A stretch of DNA of 63,348 nt, the filler included, from Pelomyxa schiedti (taxonomy: Eukaryota > Protista > Evosea): NCBI GenBank assembly GCA_020536535.1. It is 15 parts of 15 records of this genome, joined end to end, with 100 filler letters (N's around TTAATTAATTAA, not from the genome) between each part and the next. Parts side by side here need not be neighbours in the genome. Positions count along the whole stretch, not along the records: positions 8,847 to 16,710 come from JAHLWZ010001338.1; 14 more parts are not named here. One strand, written 5' to 3'. The notes under the pieces were generated by a model. That model had not been told where the DNA came from. It did not search any database and saw only the letters and a program-made list of their open reading frames with translations. A program made the position numbers and the translations under genes. This document shows, in pieces, positions 8,847 to 16,710 of this stretch. How positions within the stretch are numbered: the first letter of the stretch is position 1; every line of letters begins with the position of its first letter.

Positions 8847-9752
8847 TTATTGTAATTCTCCACCCTTCATCGTTTGTGTTCTCTGTTTGTGGGCTTGCCT
8901 TGTTTTAGATGAATGGCAGTTACGGGAAAGATGGGAAGTTTTCTCACTGAACAAGATGTGGCATCAGTGCAACTCATACTGCATTCATTACATGAGCACT
9001 CTGGGAGCAATAAATAGCCAAAAAAAAAAAACTGATTTAATGGAGACTAACCAAGTATTCCACTACACGAAGACGAGCTCCGGAAGGGACTCTTTACATG
9101 CCGAAGTAGAGAAGGTCTATTGTGCGCAAGAACCCAACATTCGTCACACAAATGTACATCACACATGGAACAAAAGGCCGTGGCACTTCTAGTGCTGCAG
9201 TCCACACACATGACAACTGATTTTCCAGGAATGAATTATTCCATTGGGTGAGGGGCAAATTAAAAAGAAAGGTACACAAGAGAATACAAGCCACACCTGG
9301 CGAAATTTCCGAGCCACGAGAGTCACCCCCACTGCTAGCAGAAACAGAAACAGCAGAGGTGATTTTTCCATCATAATCGAGAGTGACCTTTGTCAGGTAA
9401 TGGCACGTGGGGCACTCGAGGTCCCAAGGCCGTAGCACAAACATGTGACAGTGATCGCGAGGCTGCGAGATAGTACGAAGGGCATCAACCAGGCCCCGAG
9501 ACGCACACAGAGCCGCGCACGATCCACTGCAGAGGCAGTGCCCGCACTACTCAATTGCGGGAATGAACGACGTTTTGAGTCAAGGTTAAAAAAAAAAGAA
9601 TAAAAATACGAACGAAGCGATGTAAGACACACCTCCAAACAAAGAGGTTTTTGATCACCACCATTGCACACACAACAGGAACTAGGTGAGGAGCTTTCTA
9701 CACCAGGCGCCGTAGAAGAGGCCTCTTCGGTTGAAGGGTGGTTGCAGCTCAT
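8847..9752 (-). CDS. RING finger plus B-box (TRIM-like) protein; 3' truncated
   Basis: RING-like CCVC...LCLE|..CGHCLCSGSC...LECPTC, followed by B-box VMCVDCSTRSATAFCSMCDVHLCDECWVLAHNRPSLLRH. Confidence 0.75.
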
Positions 9753-9836
9753 AGTTCTATCTGGATCAAATATCAACACTTTCTGATACACGTTTCTCTC
9801 AGAGGCGCCGAAAGCTTCCACCGAAAAAAAAATCGG

Positions 9837-12800
9837 ATGTCGATTACCGCCTCCCTTGGTAGTACCGAGAGCTCTTACGGCGATGGCGCCGAAAACAGCG
9901 AGGGAGGGGTCGTGGGTGTGATGGAATGTACAACCACTGCGATGGCCGTGGCGTGTGTCACGGTTTATCTGTCAATTTGGCTTCCTGAGGCTCTCAAATC
10001 TCCTGCCGTTGTTATGTTTGTTCTGGGTGTGTCCTGTTTTCCCCCTTCTTTCTAGAACATTATTCTTCGGTTGCTTTTCTGTGCCAAAGACATCATTGTA
10101 ATACTACAATACTATCTAGCTTTGATTTTGGGGACAATTCCATCTGTTTGGGAGGCAGTCGATGCTCTGGACCCAAATGTGATTTTGTTGGTGTTTCTTC
10201 CTCCAGTGCTTTTCCAAAGTGGGTTGGAGATAGACTTTCACGTGTTCAAAAAAGTGGCATTACAGTCAATACTACTCGCAGGTCCTGGTATGATCCCCAA
10301 TCGATTACAACTTCATTAACGTGAATGTTAAGGAGTACTTGTAAGTGCCACTGTAAGCACAATAGCTGCATATTACTTGTTTGTAGATTATAACTGGAGT
10401 TGGACAGAGTGCTTATTGCTGGTTTGCAACTGCATTATGCAGTAGAACCCTCCAACAAAAACAAACAAACAAATCAAAAAAAAAAAAAGGGTGCAGCACT
10501 ATCAGCAACGGATCCAGTTGCTACAATAGCAACTATAAAAAAGTTAGGGGCATCCCCAAGAATAAGTGTCCTAATTGAAGGTACTTAGTTCCTTTGGGGT
10601 AATTAGACTTCCTTTCACCTTGGCAGGTGAGGCTTTGCTCAACGATGGTTCGGCCTATGTTTTATTTGTTGTAGTCTACAATATTATTGTTACAAACAAA
10701 TTTTCAGCTGCGGTTGTATTCCGTCAATTTTGTCAAGTGAGTGCACATATGATCTCGCAAGTTCACTTATTCTTATTGTAAAATAGCTGACTCTGGGAGG
10801 TCCTCTTTTTGGACTTGCATGTGCATATGTAACTTATCTTTGGCTGCGGTCTATTAGTAGGTTTCCTGTTCTAGAAATATCGATAACCACTTTGGCTATC
10901 TTTGGAGCCATGCTCATTTCAGGTATATCCATTCAGAGGGAGCAAGTTAATTGTTATCAGAACTCGTCAATGTATCTGGAGTACTAGCTATAGTCACCTT
11001 CGGTTTATTCATGGCTTACAAGGGAAAATATGGATACAGTCCTGGAACAAGTGAGGTATTTTTTTAAACAAAAAATTACCTCTTCACACACTACCCACTA
11101 GCCGAATTCTATTTTTTGGAATCAACTGGAATTTGGCATTAATGCCCTTATATTTTTTTTTGCTGGCCTTATTGTAATGGAGGAATTGATGTCTTCATAC
11201 AAACCCGAATTTCTTAATATCTTTACTACTTATGTGGCTCTTCAAGTTTGTTGGGCTCACTCATCTCGTTCCTCTAACTTCCTCAGGTTGGAAGAGGTCT
11301 TGCCTTACTGTTACTCCTTCCTGTTCTTGTCCATACTGGCTACGGCTTTAGTTGGAAAATGTTTCTCCTTGTTTGGAGCGCAGGGTTGCGTGGTGGGGTT
11401 TCCCTGTCCTTAGGTCTGATTGCATCTCGATCACATGATTTGACAGAGCCATTCAAGGGCCAATTTGCAACCCAAGTGAATACATACAACTGGTTCGTCT
11501 GTTAATTTTCTAAGGTTGCAGGAGCGGTTTTGTGCACATCAATTATCAATGGCTTGCTATCCAAAGTTATATACCCTCTACTTCACTTCGAGAGGAAATC
11601 AGAAATCTTACTGGGGCTATTTGAACATGCCGTCTCTTTTGTTGAGCTGTATGCAACTCTAAATGGAGGGAAACTCACGCAAGGCAGGAAAACTGCCGAA
11701 TTTATCGATGAATTGCATAAGGATACTTTTATTTGCAACTGTGATTGGGAGATGATTGGATCTGCATTACCTATTCTCGCTAAGCACACAGAATCAGCTC
11801 AAATATCCTTAAGTACGGCAGGGGGATGGCCCAGGATATGGTTACACCACTTGAGAGATATCACATCCACCCCTTTGCGTGATCCCACTCAGCCCTCCAC
11901 CTCGACGCCTCCGTCTGGTACAACAACTGATTCAGCTCCATCTCCATCCACAGCATTTCAACCGACACAAGAAGAACAGAGTTCTCTTGAAGTGACTACA
12001 CAAGAAGTCAACTCTATCTCACTCCCTTAGTAGGCACTGCACATGTTTATCAATACAGTCAAAGCAAACTATCTGGAACAATTTGAAGGCTCCTCCCACC
12101 TTGACCCATCCAGTGTGGCCTCACTTGTTGCTATAACAGATCAGGCAGCAGAGAAGAGCCTCATGTTCTTTGAGCTTTCACACACAATCTTTGCGCATGA
12201 ACTACTTGCAACAAATAAAGCTTGTTTGTGTAAACCACTTCTATCACTCTAACTCCTCATTAGATTGTCACAGCCTTACTGAAGGTGCCTATACTAAAGT
12301 ACCTTGGGATGTACCTTCTGTACAAACAGATATACCAAGCAATCAGATGCTCTCATAGCCTCTGTGCTTGTTACTCCCAAGCAACAAAAACTGTTTTGGA
12401 AACCACCTCTGTATCTCTATATCCTTCCAGTGGTTGTCTGATTTGTGTCCCAGGTGTCCTTTGCCAAAGATGTTGCCGCTGTGGAGAACAACATAACGAG
12501 CGCACTCTCTGAACTTAGGAAAGCGTGGCCTACGACATATGCCCTGGCACAACACTCTCTTGCACTTAAGATGATCATGTACCACAAGGGAACCCTCATC
12601 AGGCATGTCTACCGTGAGGGATTCATCGATTCCAAGACCAAGGACCACCTATTATCCAAGCTCAGCACAATGATACACTGTAGGGTTTCTATGGACCTCC
12701 TGCCACTCTTAACCTTACTTATTCTGCAGGTTTTGGTGCCCTGAAGATGGTGTGGATGTGTAGAGAATTACTGCTGATTGTCTCCTTGTGCAGCCCAGTT

Positions 12801-12863
12801 GAACCCACCCAAGTAGATATCCCCGATAACCAAGTCCCTTTACTTGAAATAGATGGGGTCTAA
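9837..12863 (+). CDS. CPA1 Na+/H+ exchanger, SOS1/NHX7-like, multi-exon
   Basis: Motifs DPNVILLVFLPPVLFQSG, SILLAGPG, ALSATDPVA, LIEGEALLNDGSA, VSGVLA, FFWNQLE, WSAGLRGGVSL across ~14 short GT-AG introns. Cytosolic tail ends ...PLLEIDGV* at 12863. Confidence 0.92.
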
Positions 12864-12937
12864 CTGCCCATAATTATAAAAGAGAAAAATTGAGGGCTTT
12901 GTAGTGTTTGGTGAGTTTAAGTGTATGAAAACAGACA

Positions 12938-13470
12938 TTAGGGATACCTAAGAGAAACAAGAAAAGGGAAACCAGGTCCAGAGACCTTGCAGCTTGTTAT
13001 TACATCGGAAAGGGAAGGATTTTTTTTACTTGAGAAAAAGTCTGGTTGAGGGGGCCTTTTGGACATTATGAATTGCCACAATGAGTGAGTCTCTATACTA
13101 CGTGTTTGGTAGGAGTATTCGGGTAGAGTTTCTTCAGGACAACCAGGAGCAATGAACACGACCACTGACAGTAACCGTTAAGGAAGGTGGAAAAGAGCAA
13201 ACACAAACCACGGGTGTTGAGGCCACACAACTCTTCAATTTCTTCACGGGAATATTGTCCGCCCCTTCCCATGACACTTACGAGCTGCTGAGGTGCCACG
13301 TCCTCTGGAACAGGGCGCACAATGACCTCGGCCTCTTCTTTGGTTTTTACCATTGCAAAGCCCATAGACGACAGATTGTTTTGTACCTGCGTCAACCAGC
13401 TGGAGGAACTGAGGCCGTACGTGTCCACATACACCCGCAGTGGGGGTTCGGTGGTACCGTAGGACATCAT
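12938..13470 (-). CDS. Small flavodoxin-like alpha/beta protein (TIR-like or UPF0004/MTTase-N-like), copy 1, intact
   Basis: A 44-nt intron at 13165-13208 gives MMSYGTTEPPLRVYVDTYG...NNLSSMGFAMVKTKEEAEVIVRPVPEDVAPQQLV...GGQYSREEIEELCGLNTR|VVVFIAPGCPEETLPEYSYQTR. Two paralogues nearby share the intron position, which supports coding status. The fold call is by eye. Confidence 0.7.
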
Positions 13471-13584
13471 TTCTGTTAGTTTGATTGTTCCACCAATCTT
13501 CCAAAAAAGAAAGCAACTCTTGACACCAACTTGAAAAACCTCAAAACAAAAAGAAGAAAACTCTTGAGAAGTCACCAAGAAACC

Positions 13585-14852
13585 ATGGCCGCGACCCGCG
13601 TCACACCAGAACTCATTAAAATACTGTTGCTGGGGCGTGCAGGATGTGGAAAAAGCAGCACGGCCAACACTATGTGCCACTTGCTCTCCGGGGAACCAAC
13701 AATGCAGTTCACAGTTGGTGACGGTGGACTGCAACACACTACGGCTTATGTGCAACCAGCCAACGTCTTAGTTGAACGCTGTGGAAGAGTTACCCAATAT
13801 TCATTCATTGATACGCCAGGTAGTAGTCAGCACTGTGTCTTTGTAGCTTCTAACTGTGGTACAGGACTAGTGTCAACAACTTCTGAATCTCAAGTGCACA
13901 AATGGTGGCTCAAATTGAAAGATACTCTTGAGCAATATGTATTGCCTTCTTGTGCACCTTTCACCTGGATATCACCCGTTCGTTAGAACCCAGATTTCCT
14001 GATACTGGTTACGGCCGCACAAGATTTTAACGATGCCAACAGTCCTGATGCTACTTATGCACGCAAGCTCGCGCATAACCTCAGAACTGTTCAGAGTTTC
14101 AATTTCTGTTGTATGTTTTGTCATCCATCAGGACCTCATTGTTGGACTGTTAACATTCCTCAGCAAAACCAGTACCTATTGTAGTCACCCATGTACCGGA
14201 ACTGGCTGAAAGCCTTAGTGCAGGAGATGCTGCCAAGGAGAAGGCAATGACCGCTTTACAGGTTTCCACAAACGTTTACCCAGGTAATATTGGGCCTTCC
14301 AAACAAATTAATTCCAAATCATTTGTAGTGGAAAATTATGGAAAGGAATTAGGTCCTTCTATAGTGGAGGCAACAAATACCTCTCTTGCAAGGCTATTCC
14401 ATGACATGGATGTATGGAAATCTAGAGCAACCACTGTGCGTCCTTTCCCTGTCCTTTTTAGAATGAGTAACGACTCTGAAGGCTGTTCCGTTTAACTCGT
14501 TTCCCTGTCTCCTTTCAATTGAAAAAGCTTGGTGGGGTTGGGACCAGACCGACCCTGACAATGGTATGGATGTAACAGCAGTCATACGCAGGAGGGTTCA
14601 ACGATTTTGTACTTTACCCCCACTAAGACCGACGAACCGTATCTTTGGAAGAGGTACTTCTTTTTCGTGGAGCTAGCTGGTTACTGTGTAACAGATCCCT
14701 GCTTCTTCTGGGCAAAGAAACTTTGGATTACCTATAGTTACAACAACCAAGCACCTATCACCCTGGTGTGTGTGCAGAAAGAAGAGTGTAGTATTCAAGA
14801 AACCCTGGGCAACTGGCCAATCTGGGAAGACAACCCTCGAAACAGAGTTTAG
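13585..14852 (+). CDS. IFI44/AIG1-like P-loop GTPase with a C-terminal DUF3395 (DnaJC11-C)/SUEL-lectin-like domain
   Basis: G1 ILLLGRAGCGKSS, G2 HTT, G3 FIDTPG|L, G4 PIVVTHVP, G5-like VYP|VENY (IFI44 has RILLLGPIGAGKSS, LLTHVD, VSNY). C-terminus LSIEKAWWG...MDVTAVIRRRV...IFGR|DPCFFWAKKLWITYSY. Six short introns. Confidence 0.8.
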
Positions 14853-15212
14853 CAGATGAACAGGTGGACCCAAACAAACAAAAAAAAATGAAGTCGTTGT
14901 TGCCCACCACTCAAGTAAACCCGTATCCTTCACACCGTTCTTCCTCCCCGTTTGGCCTGAATGCATTGTCTGTGAAGTGTCAAAGCACCAAGAGAAACAC
15001 TGTTTTGTTGCCGTGCATCCGGAACGCTCAGGTGACATGTAACAAGTGACAATCTGGAGAACCAAAAGAAAATGCATTCCGGTGTCTCTTAGTGAAAATA
15101 TCTCGACGGCATAAAAATGTCCACAAACTCAGTCACGGGACCAATAAATGGCGCCAGGGTACGTGATCTGGCAGAATAAGGAAGCTGCAAGTAACACCAT
15201 GGTGCCAATATC

Positions 15213-15697
15213 TTATACATTATACATTTCAAGGCAGTCACTGTCTAGGATTTTACCTGGTCTTTCTGATGGAGCAGGTCTTTTGGACATTAAGAAGTTA
15301 CCCAAGGACTCTTTCCCAACGTCACGTGTTTGAAAGGAATTGTGTGGTAGATTTTCTTCAGGACAGCCAGGAGCAATGAACACAACAACTGGTGGATGTT
15401 CGGAGAATTACAGAGGAAAGGAAAAGGGCCAGCACGAACCACGAGTGTTGAGGCTACACAAGTCATCTGTCCGCGAATATTGTCCGCCCATTTCTCTGAG
15501 AGTTACGAGCTGCTGAGGTGCCACGTCCTCTGGAACAGGGCGCACAATGATCTCAGCGTCGTATTTGTTTTCAACGATGTGAACGCTCGGGATTTCTCTC
15601 AGTGTGCCTTGCAACTTGCGGAGCCAGTCAGAGTTGCGTACATGTACGTGTCTACACACACCCTAAGCGGTGGAGGGTCCTGGCTTCTGGGTTGCAT
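15213..15697 (-). pseudogene. Copy 2 of the small alpha/beta protein, with a 1-nt frameshift
   Basis: MQPRSQDPPPLRVCVDTY-(frameshift ~15643)-HVRNSDWLRKLQGTL...DAEIIVRPVPEDVAPQQLV...GGQYSRTDDLCSLNTR|VVVFIAPGCPEENLP; same intron position as copy 1. Confidence 0.75.
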
Positions 15698-15711
15698 AAG
15701 CAGGCCGTTGA

Positions 15712-15801
15712 TGGACGGTATTAGCATTTCCGAGTCTAACTGAAGACCACCAACACTTCCACTTTTTTTTAGCAGCAACTTGGAAATGCTAATACCGTCC
15801 A
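15712..15801. repeat. 24-bp inverted repeat (1 mismatch) bounding a 90-bp MITE-like remnant
   Basis: TGGACGGTATTAGCATTTCCGAGT (15712-15735) versus ACTTGGAAATGCTAATACCGTCCA (15778-15801). No target-site duplication evident. Confidence 0.7.
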
Positions 15802-16034
15802 AGGATGCACGAGGGTCAGGACCGAAGAACAGCTTCGGTCTCGAAGGATGGCTCGAATCACAGCTTCGATTCGAATTCTAAAGCTTAGAATAGAACGCTA
15901 CCAACATTAAAAGTTGGAAAATCAAGTTCTTTTTATGGTGCTTCTTTGTCTTGTACCGTTGTGCCAAATGGCATTACATGTCCATCTGGTGGAAACCACG
16001 ACCACCCAAGGAGAGGCCAGTAGTGATGTTAGAA

Positions 16035-16365
16035 CTACAGTGAGCAGCATGAAAATCCACAAGAGAAGAGAAAATGGCAGTAATGTATTCCAGTGTCTCT
16101 TGGTAAATATATAAATGCTGCAATAGGGGGAGGGGGCCTCTTCTTCATTAAGAAGTGGGCCAAAGAGTCTTTGTCAAACTCACGGGTCTGAAAGGAATTG
16201 TGTGGTAGTGCGTGGCTATTTCTGGTTGTTGGGCAACCAGGAGCAACGAAAACAACAACTAGTGGGTAGGTTGAGACTGAATACTTGCTGGGGAAACTAG
16301 CACAAACCACGGTTGTTCAGACCACAAAGATCGTCGATATGAGTGCGGGAGTATTGTCCACCCAT
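16035..16365 (-). pseudogene. Copy 3 of the small alpha/beta protein, N-terminal half deleted
   Basis: MGGQYSRTHIDDLCGLNNR|VVVFVAPGCP...LPHNSFQTREFDKDSLAHFLMKKRPP; begins mid-domain at the junction with a GTPase fragment. Confidence 0.75.
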
Positions 16366-16710
16366 ATGCCAATTCCTTTCTCGCGACACCCACACGAACC
16401 AGTTCACAGTTGGTGATGGTGGGAATTGTCATACTACAATACGGATAGAGAGAGCAAGGGTTGACGATGTACGAAAGGAACGAGTAAACAAATTCATGAT
16501 CATCGATAGTCCCGGTTTTAGACCTGCAACCAATTTGACTGTTGGCGTTGGTTCTAACTGTCAGTAGGTCTAGTCGTCACCTCCCCCAGCGTCCCACCCA
16601 ACAACGCACTTGTCACCACACTTGGAGGCACCAATAACGACGTTCCTGTGTCTACCTCAGTTGTTGCTCTCGTTGGTTTATTGCGTCCCATCACTATGCA
16701 ACAACCAATT
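16364..16710 (+). pseudogene. Second IFI44-like GTPase, start and P-loop deleted; runs to scaffold end
   Basis: ICQFLSRDTHTNQFTVGDGGNCHTT...FMIIDSPG|LV aligns to MCHLLSGEPTMQFTVGDGGLQHTT...SFIDTPG|LV of the 13585 gene, with the same intron phase and position. Confidence 0.8.

Follow-up and report, generated by a model that had tools for sequence, protein, structure and literature searches.

The DNA considered here (the window) is a stretch of 63,348 nucleotides, filler included, from Pelomyxa schiedti, an anaerobic amoeba of the Archamoebae. Its piece 8847-16710, which is the complete 7,864-bp contig JAHLWZ010001338.1 of assembly GCA_020536535.1, carries a head-to-head pair of genes encoding a small protein and a divergent AIG1/GIMAP-like GTPase. 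This pair is expressed, divergently oriented, copied as a unit, partly decaying and otherwise under purifying selection. A functional coupling of the two genes is proposed, and an immune role is conceivable. The pair would form a two-gene cassette, known to date from P. schiedti alone, whose products act together in a conflict-related process, a reading for which we consider the balance to be even.

Contigs from four public runs (X1 to X4) of one single-cell study (PMC8887013) were compared with positions 12700-16710. Those of X1 and X2 follow the DNA colinearly, X3 comes from the same sample, and X4 is single-cell RNA sequencing. The X3 and X4 contigs skip short GT..AG segments and are therefore derived from complementary DNA (cDNA). 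Database queries were single exons or open reading frames, or database proteins identical to the spliced models, and exons were joined in local scripts for translation, exact mapping and the ratio of non-synonymous to synonymous substitution rates (dN/dS, or omega). The Pfam gathering cut-offs are 27 bits for AIG1, 21.9 for MMR_HSR1, 27.1 for DnaJ-like_C11_C, 31.4 for SUEL_Lectin and 27 for UPF0004. The intact pair comprises the following features:

12948-13470, minus strand: small gene copy 1, Pelo_17415 (protein P0001), 144 amino acids, from an X3 spliced cDNA contig and exact protein mapping
13209-13470, 13030-13164 and 12951-12985, minus strand: coding exons of Pelo_17415, from exact mapping of P0001; the stop codon is at 12948-12950
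13165-13208 and 12986-13029, minus strand: introns of Pelo_17415, 44 nt each, from the X3 cDNA contig
13471-13584, unstranded: 114-bp spacer between the divergent ATGs, a presumed bidirectional promoter
13585-14852, plus strand: GTPase copy 1, Pelo_17416 (protein P0006), 329 amino acids, seven exons, from X3 and X4 contigs, the RNA model being identical to P0006
13585-13819, 13865-13938, 13987-14110, 14164-14283, 14329-14435, 14482-14653 and 14695-14852, plus strand: exons of Pelo_17416
13820-13864, 13939-13986, 14111-14163, 14284-14328, 14436-14481 and 14654-14694, plus strand: the six introns of Pelo_17416, 41-53 nt
Residues ~10-215 and ~230-312 of Pelo_17416: AIG1-like G domain and DUF3395/DnaJ-like_C11_C-type domain, respectively, from Pfam

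Both genes of this pair are transcribed and spliced, with X3 contigs covering both and X4 contigs covering the GTPase. The cDNA contigs skip six introns in the GTPase gene and three in the small gene, all GT..AG, and every verified intron at the locus is of this type and 41-53 nt long; the P. schiedti genome has 7.4 introns per gene (PMC8887013). A further spliced intron of 51 nt (12897-12947) lies in the 3' untranslated region immediately after the Pelo_17415 stop codon, which forms the last triplet of its exon. The spliced models derived from RNA are identical to the annotated Pelo_17415 and Pelo_17416, an agreement that is not independent, the annotation having been built from the same transcriptomes. 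The proteins are annotated in the P. schiedti assembly, in line with the amoebal origin claimed by the original prediction, which also placed the two starts 114 bp apart: the ATGs map at 13470 (minus strand) and 13585 (plus strand), leaving exactly that distance, with an A-rich spacer ahead of the GTPase ATG.

The pair is not confined to this contig. Queried with exon 1 of the small gene, a word-based protein search gave four matches, all of them P. schiedti hypothetical proteins (Pelo_...), and the four small-family proteins are split evenly between the 7,864-bp contig and a second contig of 43,356 bp, JAHLWZ010000628.1. Two stretches of the latter, L001 and L002, hold further copies:

L001 8599-9862, minus strand: GTPase Pelo_8000, 331 amino acids
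L001 from 10001, plus strand: small gene Pelo_7999, 138 bp from Pelo_8000
L002 844-2155, minus strand: AIG1-like GTPase, 345 amino acids
L002 2343-2546, plus strand: small-gene copy facing the L002 GTPase, interrupted by an assembly gap

Across the two contigs, the family comprises solo copies and at least three pairs, whose start codons lie 114-240 bp apart. All six intron positions are common to Pelo_17416 and Pelo_8000. The small family has six known members, four of them annotated and two relics, and each adjoins this GTPase subfamily or a contig end. The small copy Pelo_8009, whose N terminus is lost to the contig end, lies convergent to the L002 GTPase and mirrors the position of copy 2 behind GTPase 1 in the window. 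The small genes of L001 and L002 share 97% identity over 166 bp of exon 1 while the adjacent GTPases are not so alike, which indicates local gene conversion. The annotation of Pelo_7999 is probably wrong, intron 1 being read through and exon 2 (L001 10405-10572) missed. An X3 contig with a loose end at window position 13609 opens with 30 bases that match the beginning of the L002 GTPase coding sequence, after which it runs on in sequence that GTPase 1 has as well; it suggests that the X3 sample contains, and perhaps expresses, the L002 paralogue. Beyond the assembly gap, L002 2546-3260 is very GC-rich and carries long Gly/Arg/Ala-rich open reading frames on both strands, unlike its surroundings, and may be a scaffolding artefact.

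Decay of the pair is seen downstream of the intact copy, where the window array adds one frameshifted solo small copy and one dead pair:

15132-15727, minus strand: small gene copy 2, Pelo_17417, from tblastn and protein mapping, with partial RNA support
15712-15801, unstranded: inverted repeat (I1 of the repeat scan), 24 nt, 96% complementary, with a 42-nt loop
16125-16365, minus strand: small gene copy 3, a relic covering residues ~69-128 (16309-16365 and 16125-16259), from tblastn
16364-16585, plus strand: GTPase copy 2, a relic, from repeat D11 and tblastn
16586-16710, unstranded: high-copy repeat at the contig end, with a depth of 500-590x in X1 and X2 and several loose ends

DNA repeats link 13041-13446 with 15265-15673 and 16129-16363 (families D1-D6, D9 and D11 connect the copies), and another links 13705-13727 with 16400-16422 in the GTPase copies. 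In tblastn, the small protein matches copy 2 at an expectation value (E) of 1e-33 and copy 3 at 4e-14, and the GTPase matches GTPase copy 2 at 1e-8. Small copy 2 (tblastn span 15147-15673) is 50-55% identical to copy 1 and changes frame between 15644 and 15641 with the loss of two codons. The Pelo_17417 annotation spans this frameshift by a 47-nt "intron" (15615-15661) for which no RNA support was seen; the 3' intron at 15212-15256 is supported by RNA, and the last exon (15132-15211) encodes a hydrophobic C terminus. No GTPase remnant was found by tblastn upstream of small copy 2 in the window. The inverted repeat occupies the 5' edge of this copy, where the partner GTPase would be expected, and may mark the breakpoint of its loss.

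The dead pair keeps its divergent orientation. Small copy 3 is truncated at its 5' end by deletion of the N-terminal ~68 codons and is fused head to head to GTPase copy 2, which keeps residues ~30-85 (16364-16534) followed by a remnant of intron 1, its P-loop being deleted. Both 5' ends and the spacer were therefore lost in a single deletion of roughly 400 bp. Beyond about residue 85, GTPase copy 2 is cut by the high-copy repeat, which has several alternative continuations in the DNA runs and translates into Ser/Thr/Val/Pro-rich sequence. The gene counts that had been proposed (three small genes and two GTPases) are thus upheld by repeat families and tblastn, as are the divergent abutment of the third small copy on the second GTPase, with its junction at 16364-16365, and the breakage of three of the five copies, one by a frameshift and two by 5' truncation. 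Duplication as a unit with birth-and-death turnover, also part of the original prediction, is supported by the recurrence of pairs on the second contig and from the dead pair and the frameshifted copy in the window.

The age of the pairs can be set against that of their flank, which is shared by the two contigs:

8847-12866, unstranded: conserved flank, with the 5' part of a B-box gene and a Na+/H+ exchanger gene, from identity to JAHLWZ010000628.1
About 9444, minus strand: ATG of the B-box gene in the left flank of the window
About 9940-12860, plus strand: complete Na+/H+ exchanger gene

This flank is 89% identical to L001 (10795-14790) over 4,072 bp, with most 200-bp blocks at 88-98%, and identity collapses within about 100 bp at about 12,800, near the 3' end of the exchanger gene. 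Synonymous divergence (dS) is 0.18-0.30 in five exon segments of the exchanger (omega 0.12-0.32), about 1.0 in the small genes (omega about 0.32) and about 1.7 between the GTPases Pelo_17416 and Pelo_8000 (omega 0.24), which share 50% of their amino acids. The pairs long predate the event, duplication or haplotype split, that separated their flanks. Old paralogues that differ from each other stand beside the same flank, a pattern that birth-and-death with rearrangement produces. The proportions of non-synonymous (pN) and synonymous (pS) differences are 0.31 and 0.67 between the GTPases (Fisher p 5e-21), and non-synonymous changes are also rarer than synonymous ones in the small genes (Fisher p about 1e-5). 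The two genes therefore truly encode proteins and are constrained, purifying selection acting on either family. Scans of the piece for Rfam families and tRNAs gave no match.

The GTPase, a cytosolic protein, is best described, from its sequence, as divergent and on the border of the AIG1/GIMAP family, to whose G domain it adds a beta-rich domain of DUF3395 type. Pelo_17416 matches Pfam AIG1 (PF04548) with 30.0 bits and an E of 4e-7 over residues 12-120 (profile positions 2-99 of 212), above the cut-off; Pelo_8000 reaches 19.3 bits, below it. MMR_HSR1 is matched by Pelo_17416 with 23.4 bits, also above its cut-off. Weak matches include the Toc86/159 G domain and, in the PDB, GIMAP5, GIMAP7, septin-9 and a dynamin-like GTPase, and all ten nearest neighbours in the ESM Atlas are AIG1/MMR_HSR1 clusters. 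The G1 P-loop GRAGCGKS, which starts at residue 17, fits GxxxxGK[ST], and the G3 motif DxxG reads DTPG in Pelo_17416, DSQG in Pelo_8000 and DSPG in the relic. Between G3 and G4 and inside the Pfam match lies a hydrophobic box, NPDFLILV or NPHFVILV, at the expected place of the "conserved box" of GIMAPs (consensus ...GPHA-LLLV...), to which it may correspond. Outside Pelomyxa, no significant full-length relative turned up in a word-based protein search queried with Pelo_8000. The AlphaFold2 model of the GTPase has a predicted local distance difference test score (pLDDT) of 42, with residues ~230-312 alone near 70; fold searches with it returned noise, and no conclusion was drawn from them.

At the C terminus, DnaJ-like_C11_C (DUF3395, PF11875) is matched with 27.1 bits by whole Pelo_8000 and with 30.7 bits (E 3e-7) by its C-terminal domain alone. 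The corresponding domain of Pelo_17416 scores 14.6 bits (E 0.03), yet Pelo_17416 is 50% identical to Pelo_8000, and exon 7 of the L002 GTPase matches with an E of 0.002. SUEL_Lectin (PF02140) is matched with 15-18 bits, against the 31.4 needed, and over the last 25 profile positions only. No signal peptide, N-terminal extension or SUEL cysteine framework is found in the GTPase sequence; together with the low score, the missing signal peptide and cysteines make a lectin role doubtful. The original prediction had described an IFI44-like GTPase with a SUEL/DUF3395-like C-terminal domain and had pointed to IFI44 and AIG1/GIMAP GTPases as associated with immunity. Its AIG1/GIMAP part holds, Pelo_17416 passing the Pfam AIG1 cut-off and GIMAP5 and GIMAP7 being the best weak PDB matches, and so does its DUF3395 part, by virtue of the paralogue; the SUEL part reduces to a weak motif. 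The IFI44 label was not adopted: the P-loop at residue 17 leaves no room for an IFI44-type N-terminal domain, a TLDc-like region, and no match to such a domain was found in Pfam.

The small protein belongs to no family that we could recognise. Residues ~47-97 are almost invariant in the alignment of copies, with the core motif AE-[IV]-IVRPVP-x-DVAPQQLV ... GGQYSR ... LC-x-L-x-TRVVVF-[IV]-APGCP. No significant relatives besides those of Pelomyxa were found in Pfam, PDB, PADLOC, NCBIfam, the ESM Atlas or JGI metagenomes, and when 1.84 billion representative proteins were searched with a profile, no significant relative appeared beyond four Pelomyxa proteins. Three weaker, sub-threshold matches of that search (E 1.5e-5 to 7.7e-4), to HEAT-like repeats, a giant cadherin/leucine-rich repeat protein and a double HMA protein, are all internally repetitive and were taken as chance boosted by repeats; that residues 10-72 might be HMA-like (beta-alpha-beta-beta-alpha-beta) is no more than a lead. 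A scan of JGI metagenomes with the small-protein alignment gave 599 pattern matches with zero confirmed, and the feature search of the ESM Atlas gave no usable match. The AlphaFold2 model is too poor (pLDDT 45) for a fold to be assigned, and Foldseek and Atlas searches with it returned nothing at E<=0.001 or with a template modelling (TM) score above 0.43, that is, noise, as did a VIA-wide shape search. The protein is plausibly alpha/beta.

Two likenesses proposed earlier for the small protein were followed up. A TIR-like nature finds no backing: four paralogues gave no match at E<=10 with the TIR profiles of Pfam (TIR, TIR_2) and PADLOC (ThsB/TIR), and none was found in the PDB. The glutamate of the QYSR-x-E stretch, thought to be kept only in the intact copy, is also present, as E77, in Pelo_7999 and Pelo_8009. 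The resemblance to the UPF0004/methylthiotransferase (MTTase) N-domain (PF00919) is detectable; it lies far below threshold and in one paralogue only (12.8 bits, E 0.13, against a cut-off of 27). In the same stretch, residues 12-51, NCBIfam TIGR01578 is matched with an E of 0.013, and MiaB is among the Foldseek matches of the model with an E of about 1; the Fe-S cysteines of MTTases are absent from the small-protein sequence. Transfer of an MTTase N-domain from the radical-SAM gene of L001 was considered and rejected: this neighbour has a PflA-like CxxxCxxC layout and is not an MTTase. The C-terminal stretches of Pelo_8009 and Pelo_17417 are hydrophobic (Kyte-Doolittle values over 15 residues of 2.9 and 2.0) and could be tail anchors.

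A mechanism may be sketched from these features. The small protein, of ~145 amino acids, would most likely be an adaptor or regulator of the GTPase, and two of its paralogues have a hydrophobic tail that could serve as a membrane anchor. Like GIMAP/AIG1 proteins, the GTPase would form oligomers when it binds GTP, and its DUF3395 domain would bind a partner or ligand. A conflict-related role, such as the handling of prey bacteria or prokaryotic endosymbionts, is suggested by the turnover pattern. P. schiedti is reported to take up bacteria and to harbour bacterial and archaeal endosymbionts (PMC10579272). Prey and endosymbionts are a plausible arena for the cassette; they are a setting, and not evidence for its role.

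Several known systems offer parallels. The closest of them is the AIG1 family of Entamoeba histolytica, Entamoeba being an archamoeba too. This family numbers at least 28 members, arranged in tandem; neighbouring genes recombine, which leads to gene loss and to presence/absence polymorphism, and its genes affect adhesion and virulence (PMC5884625). The Pelomyxa GTPases resemble it in their P-loop GxxxxGKS, their DxxG motif and their lineage-specific tandem copies with gain and loss. Unlike typical AIG1 proteins, they are very divergent and match only the N-terminal half of the profile, and unlike AIG1/GIMAP proteins in general, they have a C-terminal DUF3395-type domain and a divergent small partner gene; we know of no description of either for that family. 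The last ~85 residues resemble the C-terminal domain of DNAJC11, with a match at or above the PF11875 cut-off in a paralogue; the GTPase has no J domain and is therefore not a DNAJC11 orthologue. With SUEL domains it shares a terminal motif, FG-x-DPC...KKL-x-[IV]-x-Y; carbohydrate binding has no support. With IFI44/IFI44L it shares a P-loop GTPase domain of the broad TRAFAC/paraseptin-like class, which has immune-associated relatives. Plant paired nucleotide-binding leucine-rich repeat (NLR) genes (RRS1/RPS4) and Dictyostelium tgrB1/tgrC1 are likewise divergently oriented, with a short spacer, unit duplication and strongly diverged and decaying copies; the protein families are unrelated, and the likeness is one of arrangement only. 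What is new here is the combination of an AIG1-like GTPase with a DUF3395 domain and a co-duplicated orphan partner.

Several observations weigh against a cooperating cassette. All pairs derive from one ancestral pair, and their repeated adjacency is therefore expected from unit duplication alone and lends no independent weight to a functional link. The genome is compact (intergenic regions of 38-500 bp in L001), so that a head-to-head spacer of 114 bp is not unusual, and no spacer sequence or motif was found conserved across the three pairs. The family is known from one species only. The X4 contigs contain the GTPase, and the small gene was not seen in them, though contigs cannot prove absence. 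The expected G4 strand of the GTPase, outside the Pfam match, reads VTHVPE or VTHVTE and does not have the canonical NKxD. The intact small copy 1 carries no hydrophobic tail, and the low-scoring model of the small protein, with its alternating order of strands and helices, was built from an 8-row alignment of Pelomyxa sequences only.

The main alternative is that the two genes are neighbours by descent only, with unrelated functions and a shared compact intergenic region; tandem or segmental duplication, which takes along any adjacent genes, would have copied them together. Other genes of this compact genome are head-to-head neighbours as well (499 bp separate the Na+/H+ exchanger gene from the B-box gene), the pairs share no spacer motif, a solo small copy exists beside no GTPase of its own, and exon 1 was homogenised between L001 and L002 independently of the adjacent GTPases. 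Set against this are the position of all six known small-family members beside this GTPase subfamily or at a contig end, and the purifying selection that, in at least two pairs, still acts on each of the two partners at dS>1. Neighbourhood by descent alone is an explanation to be taken seriously, though we regard it as somewhat improbable.

A more specific form of the cooperating cassette would be a two-component system in which the GTPase senses a ligand from prey bacteria or endosymbionts through a cytosolic DUF3395/SUEL-like domain and acts through the small protein of unrecognised family, some paralogues of which would be membrane-anchored, as a protist module for immunity or the control of symbionts that diversifies through birth and death. 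Taken with all these details, such a system seems unlikely.

The two contigs might instead be divergent haplotypes of one locus, and the array a hypervariable allorecognition or immune-haplotype region within conserved flanks. The drop of flank identity from 88-98% within about 100 bp at the array edge would fit this, as would the window array beside the exchanger, which is closer to the far-end array of the other contig than to its positional counterpart. Sequence of both contigs is also present in runs of the same sample, where the X3 loose end at 13609 corresponds to the start of the L002 GTPase. The flank dS of 0.18-0.30 is, however, very high for alleles. The assembly combines several single cells after whole-genome amplification, and 8.6% of its BUSCOs are duplicated (PMC8887013), so that paralogous segments or co-assembly of different cells explain the data equally well, and we judge haplotypes to be distinctly unlikely.

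That a TIR-like (NAD-cleaving, NAD being nicotinamide adenine dinucleotide) or flavodoxin-fold effector is paired with an IFI44-like sensor GTPase-lectin in an innate-immunity module is very improbable, since the alternating beta/alpha order of the model, the very weak UPF0004/MiaB likeness at residues 12-51, the glutamate kept in three of the five copies retaining the stretch, and an AIG1-type GTPase whose turnover fits conflict genes are met by the absence of TIR, TIR_2 and ThsB matches, by a model too poor for a fold test with shape searches that return noise, and by a GTPase that has neither signal peptide nor SUEL cysteines and scores about half of what the lectin profile demands.

The locus bears on archamoebal gene content and on the AIG1/GIMAP family. 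Mastigamoeba balamuthi is reported to have no AIG1 GTPases, and the archamoebal ancestor is inferred to have had none (PMC8136499); the AIG1-like genes of Pelomyxa, at least three in number, bear on this inference, though they are very divergent. If history alone explains the adjacency, the locus holds an ordinary lineage-specific family next to an orphan gene. AIG1/GIMAP GTPases are tied to plant and animal immunity and to Entamoeba virulence, yet little is known of how they work and with which partners. If the coupling is true, P. schiedti would offer a simple system, in a free-living archamoeba, for finding what AIG1/GIMAP GTPases bind and regulate.

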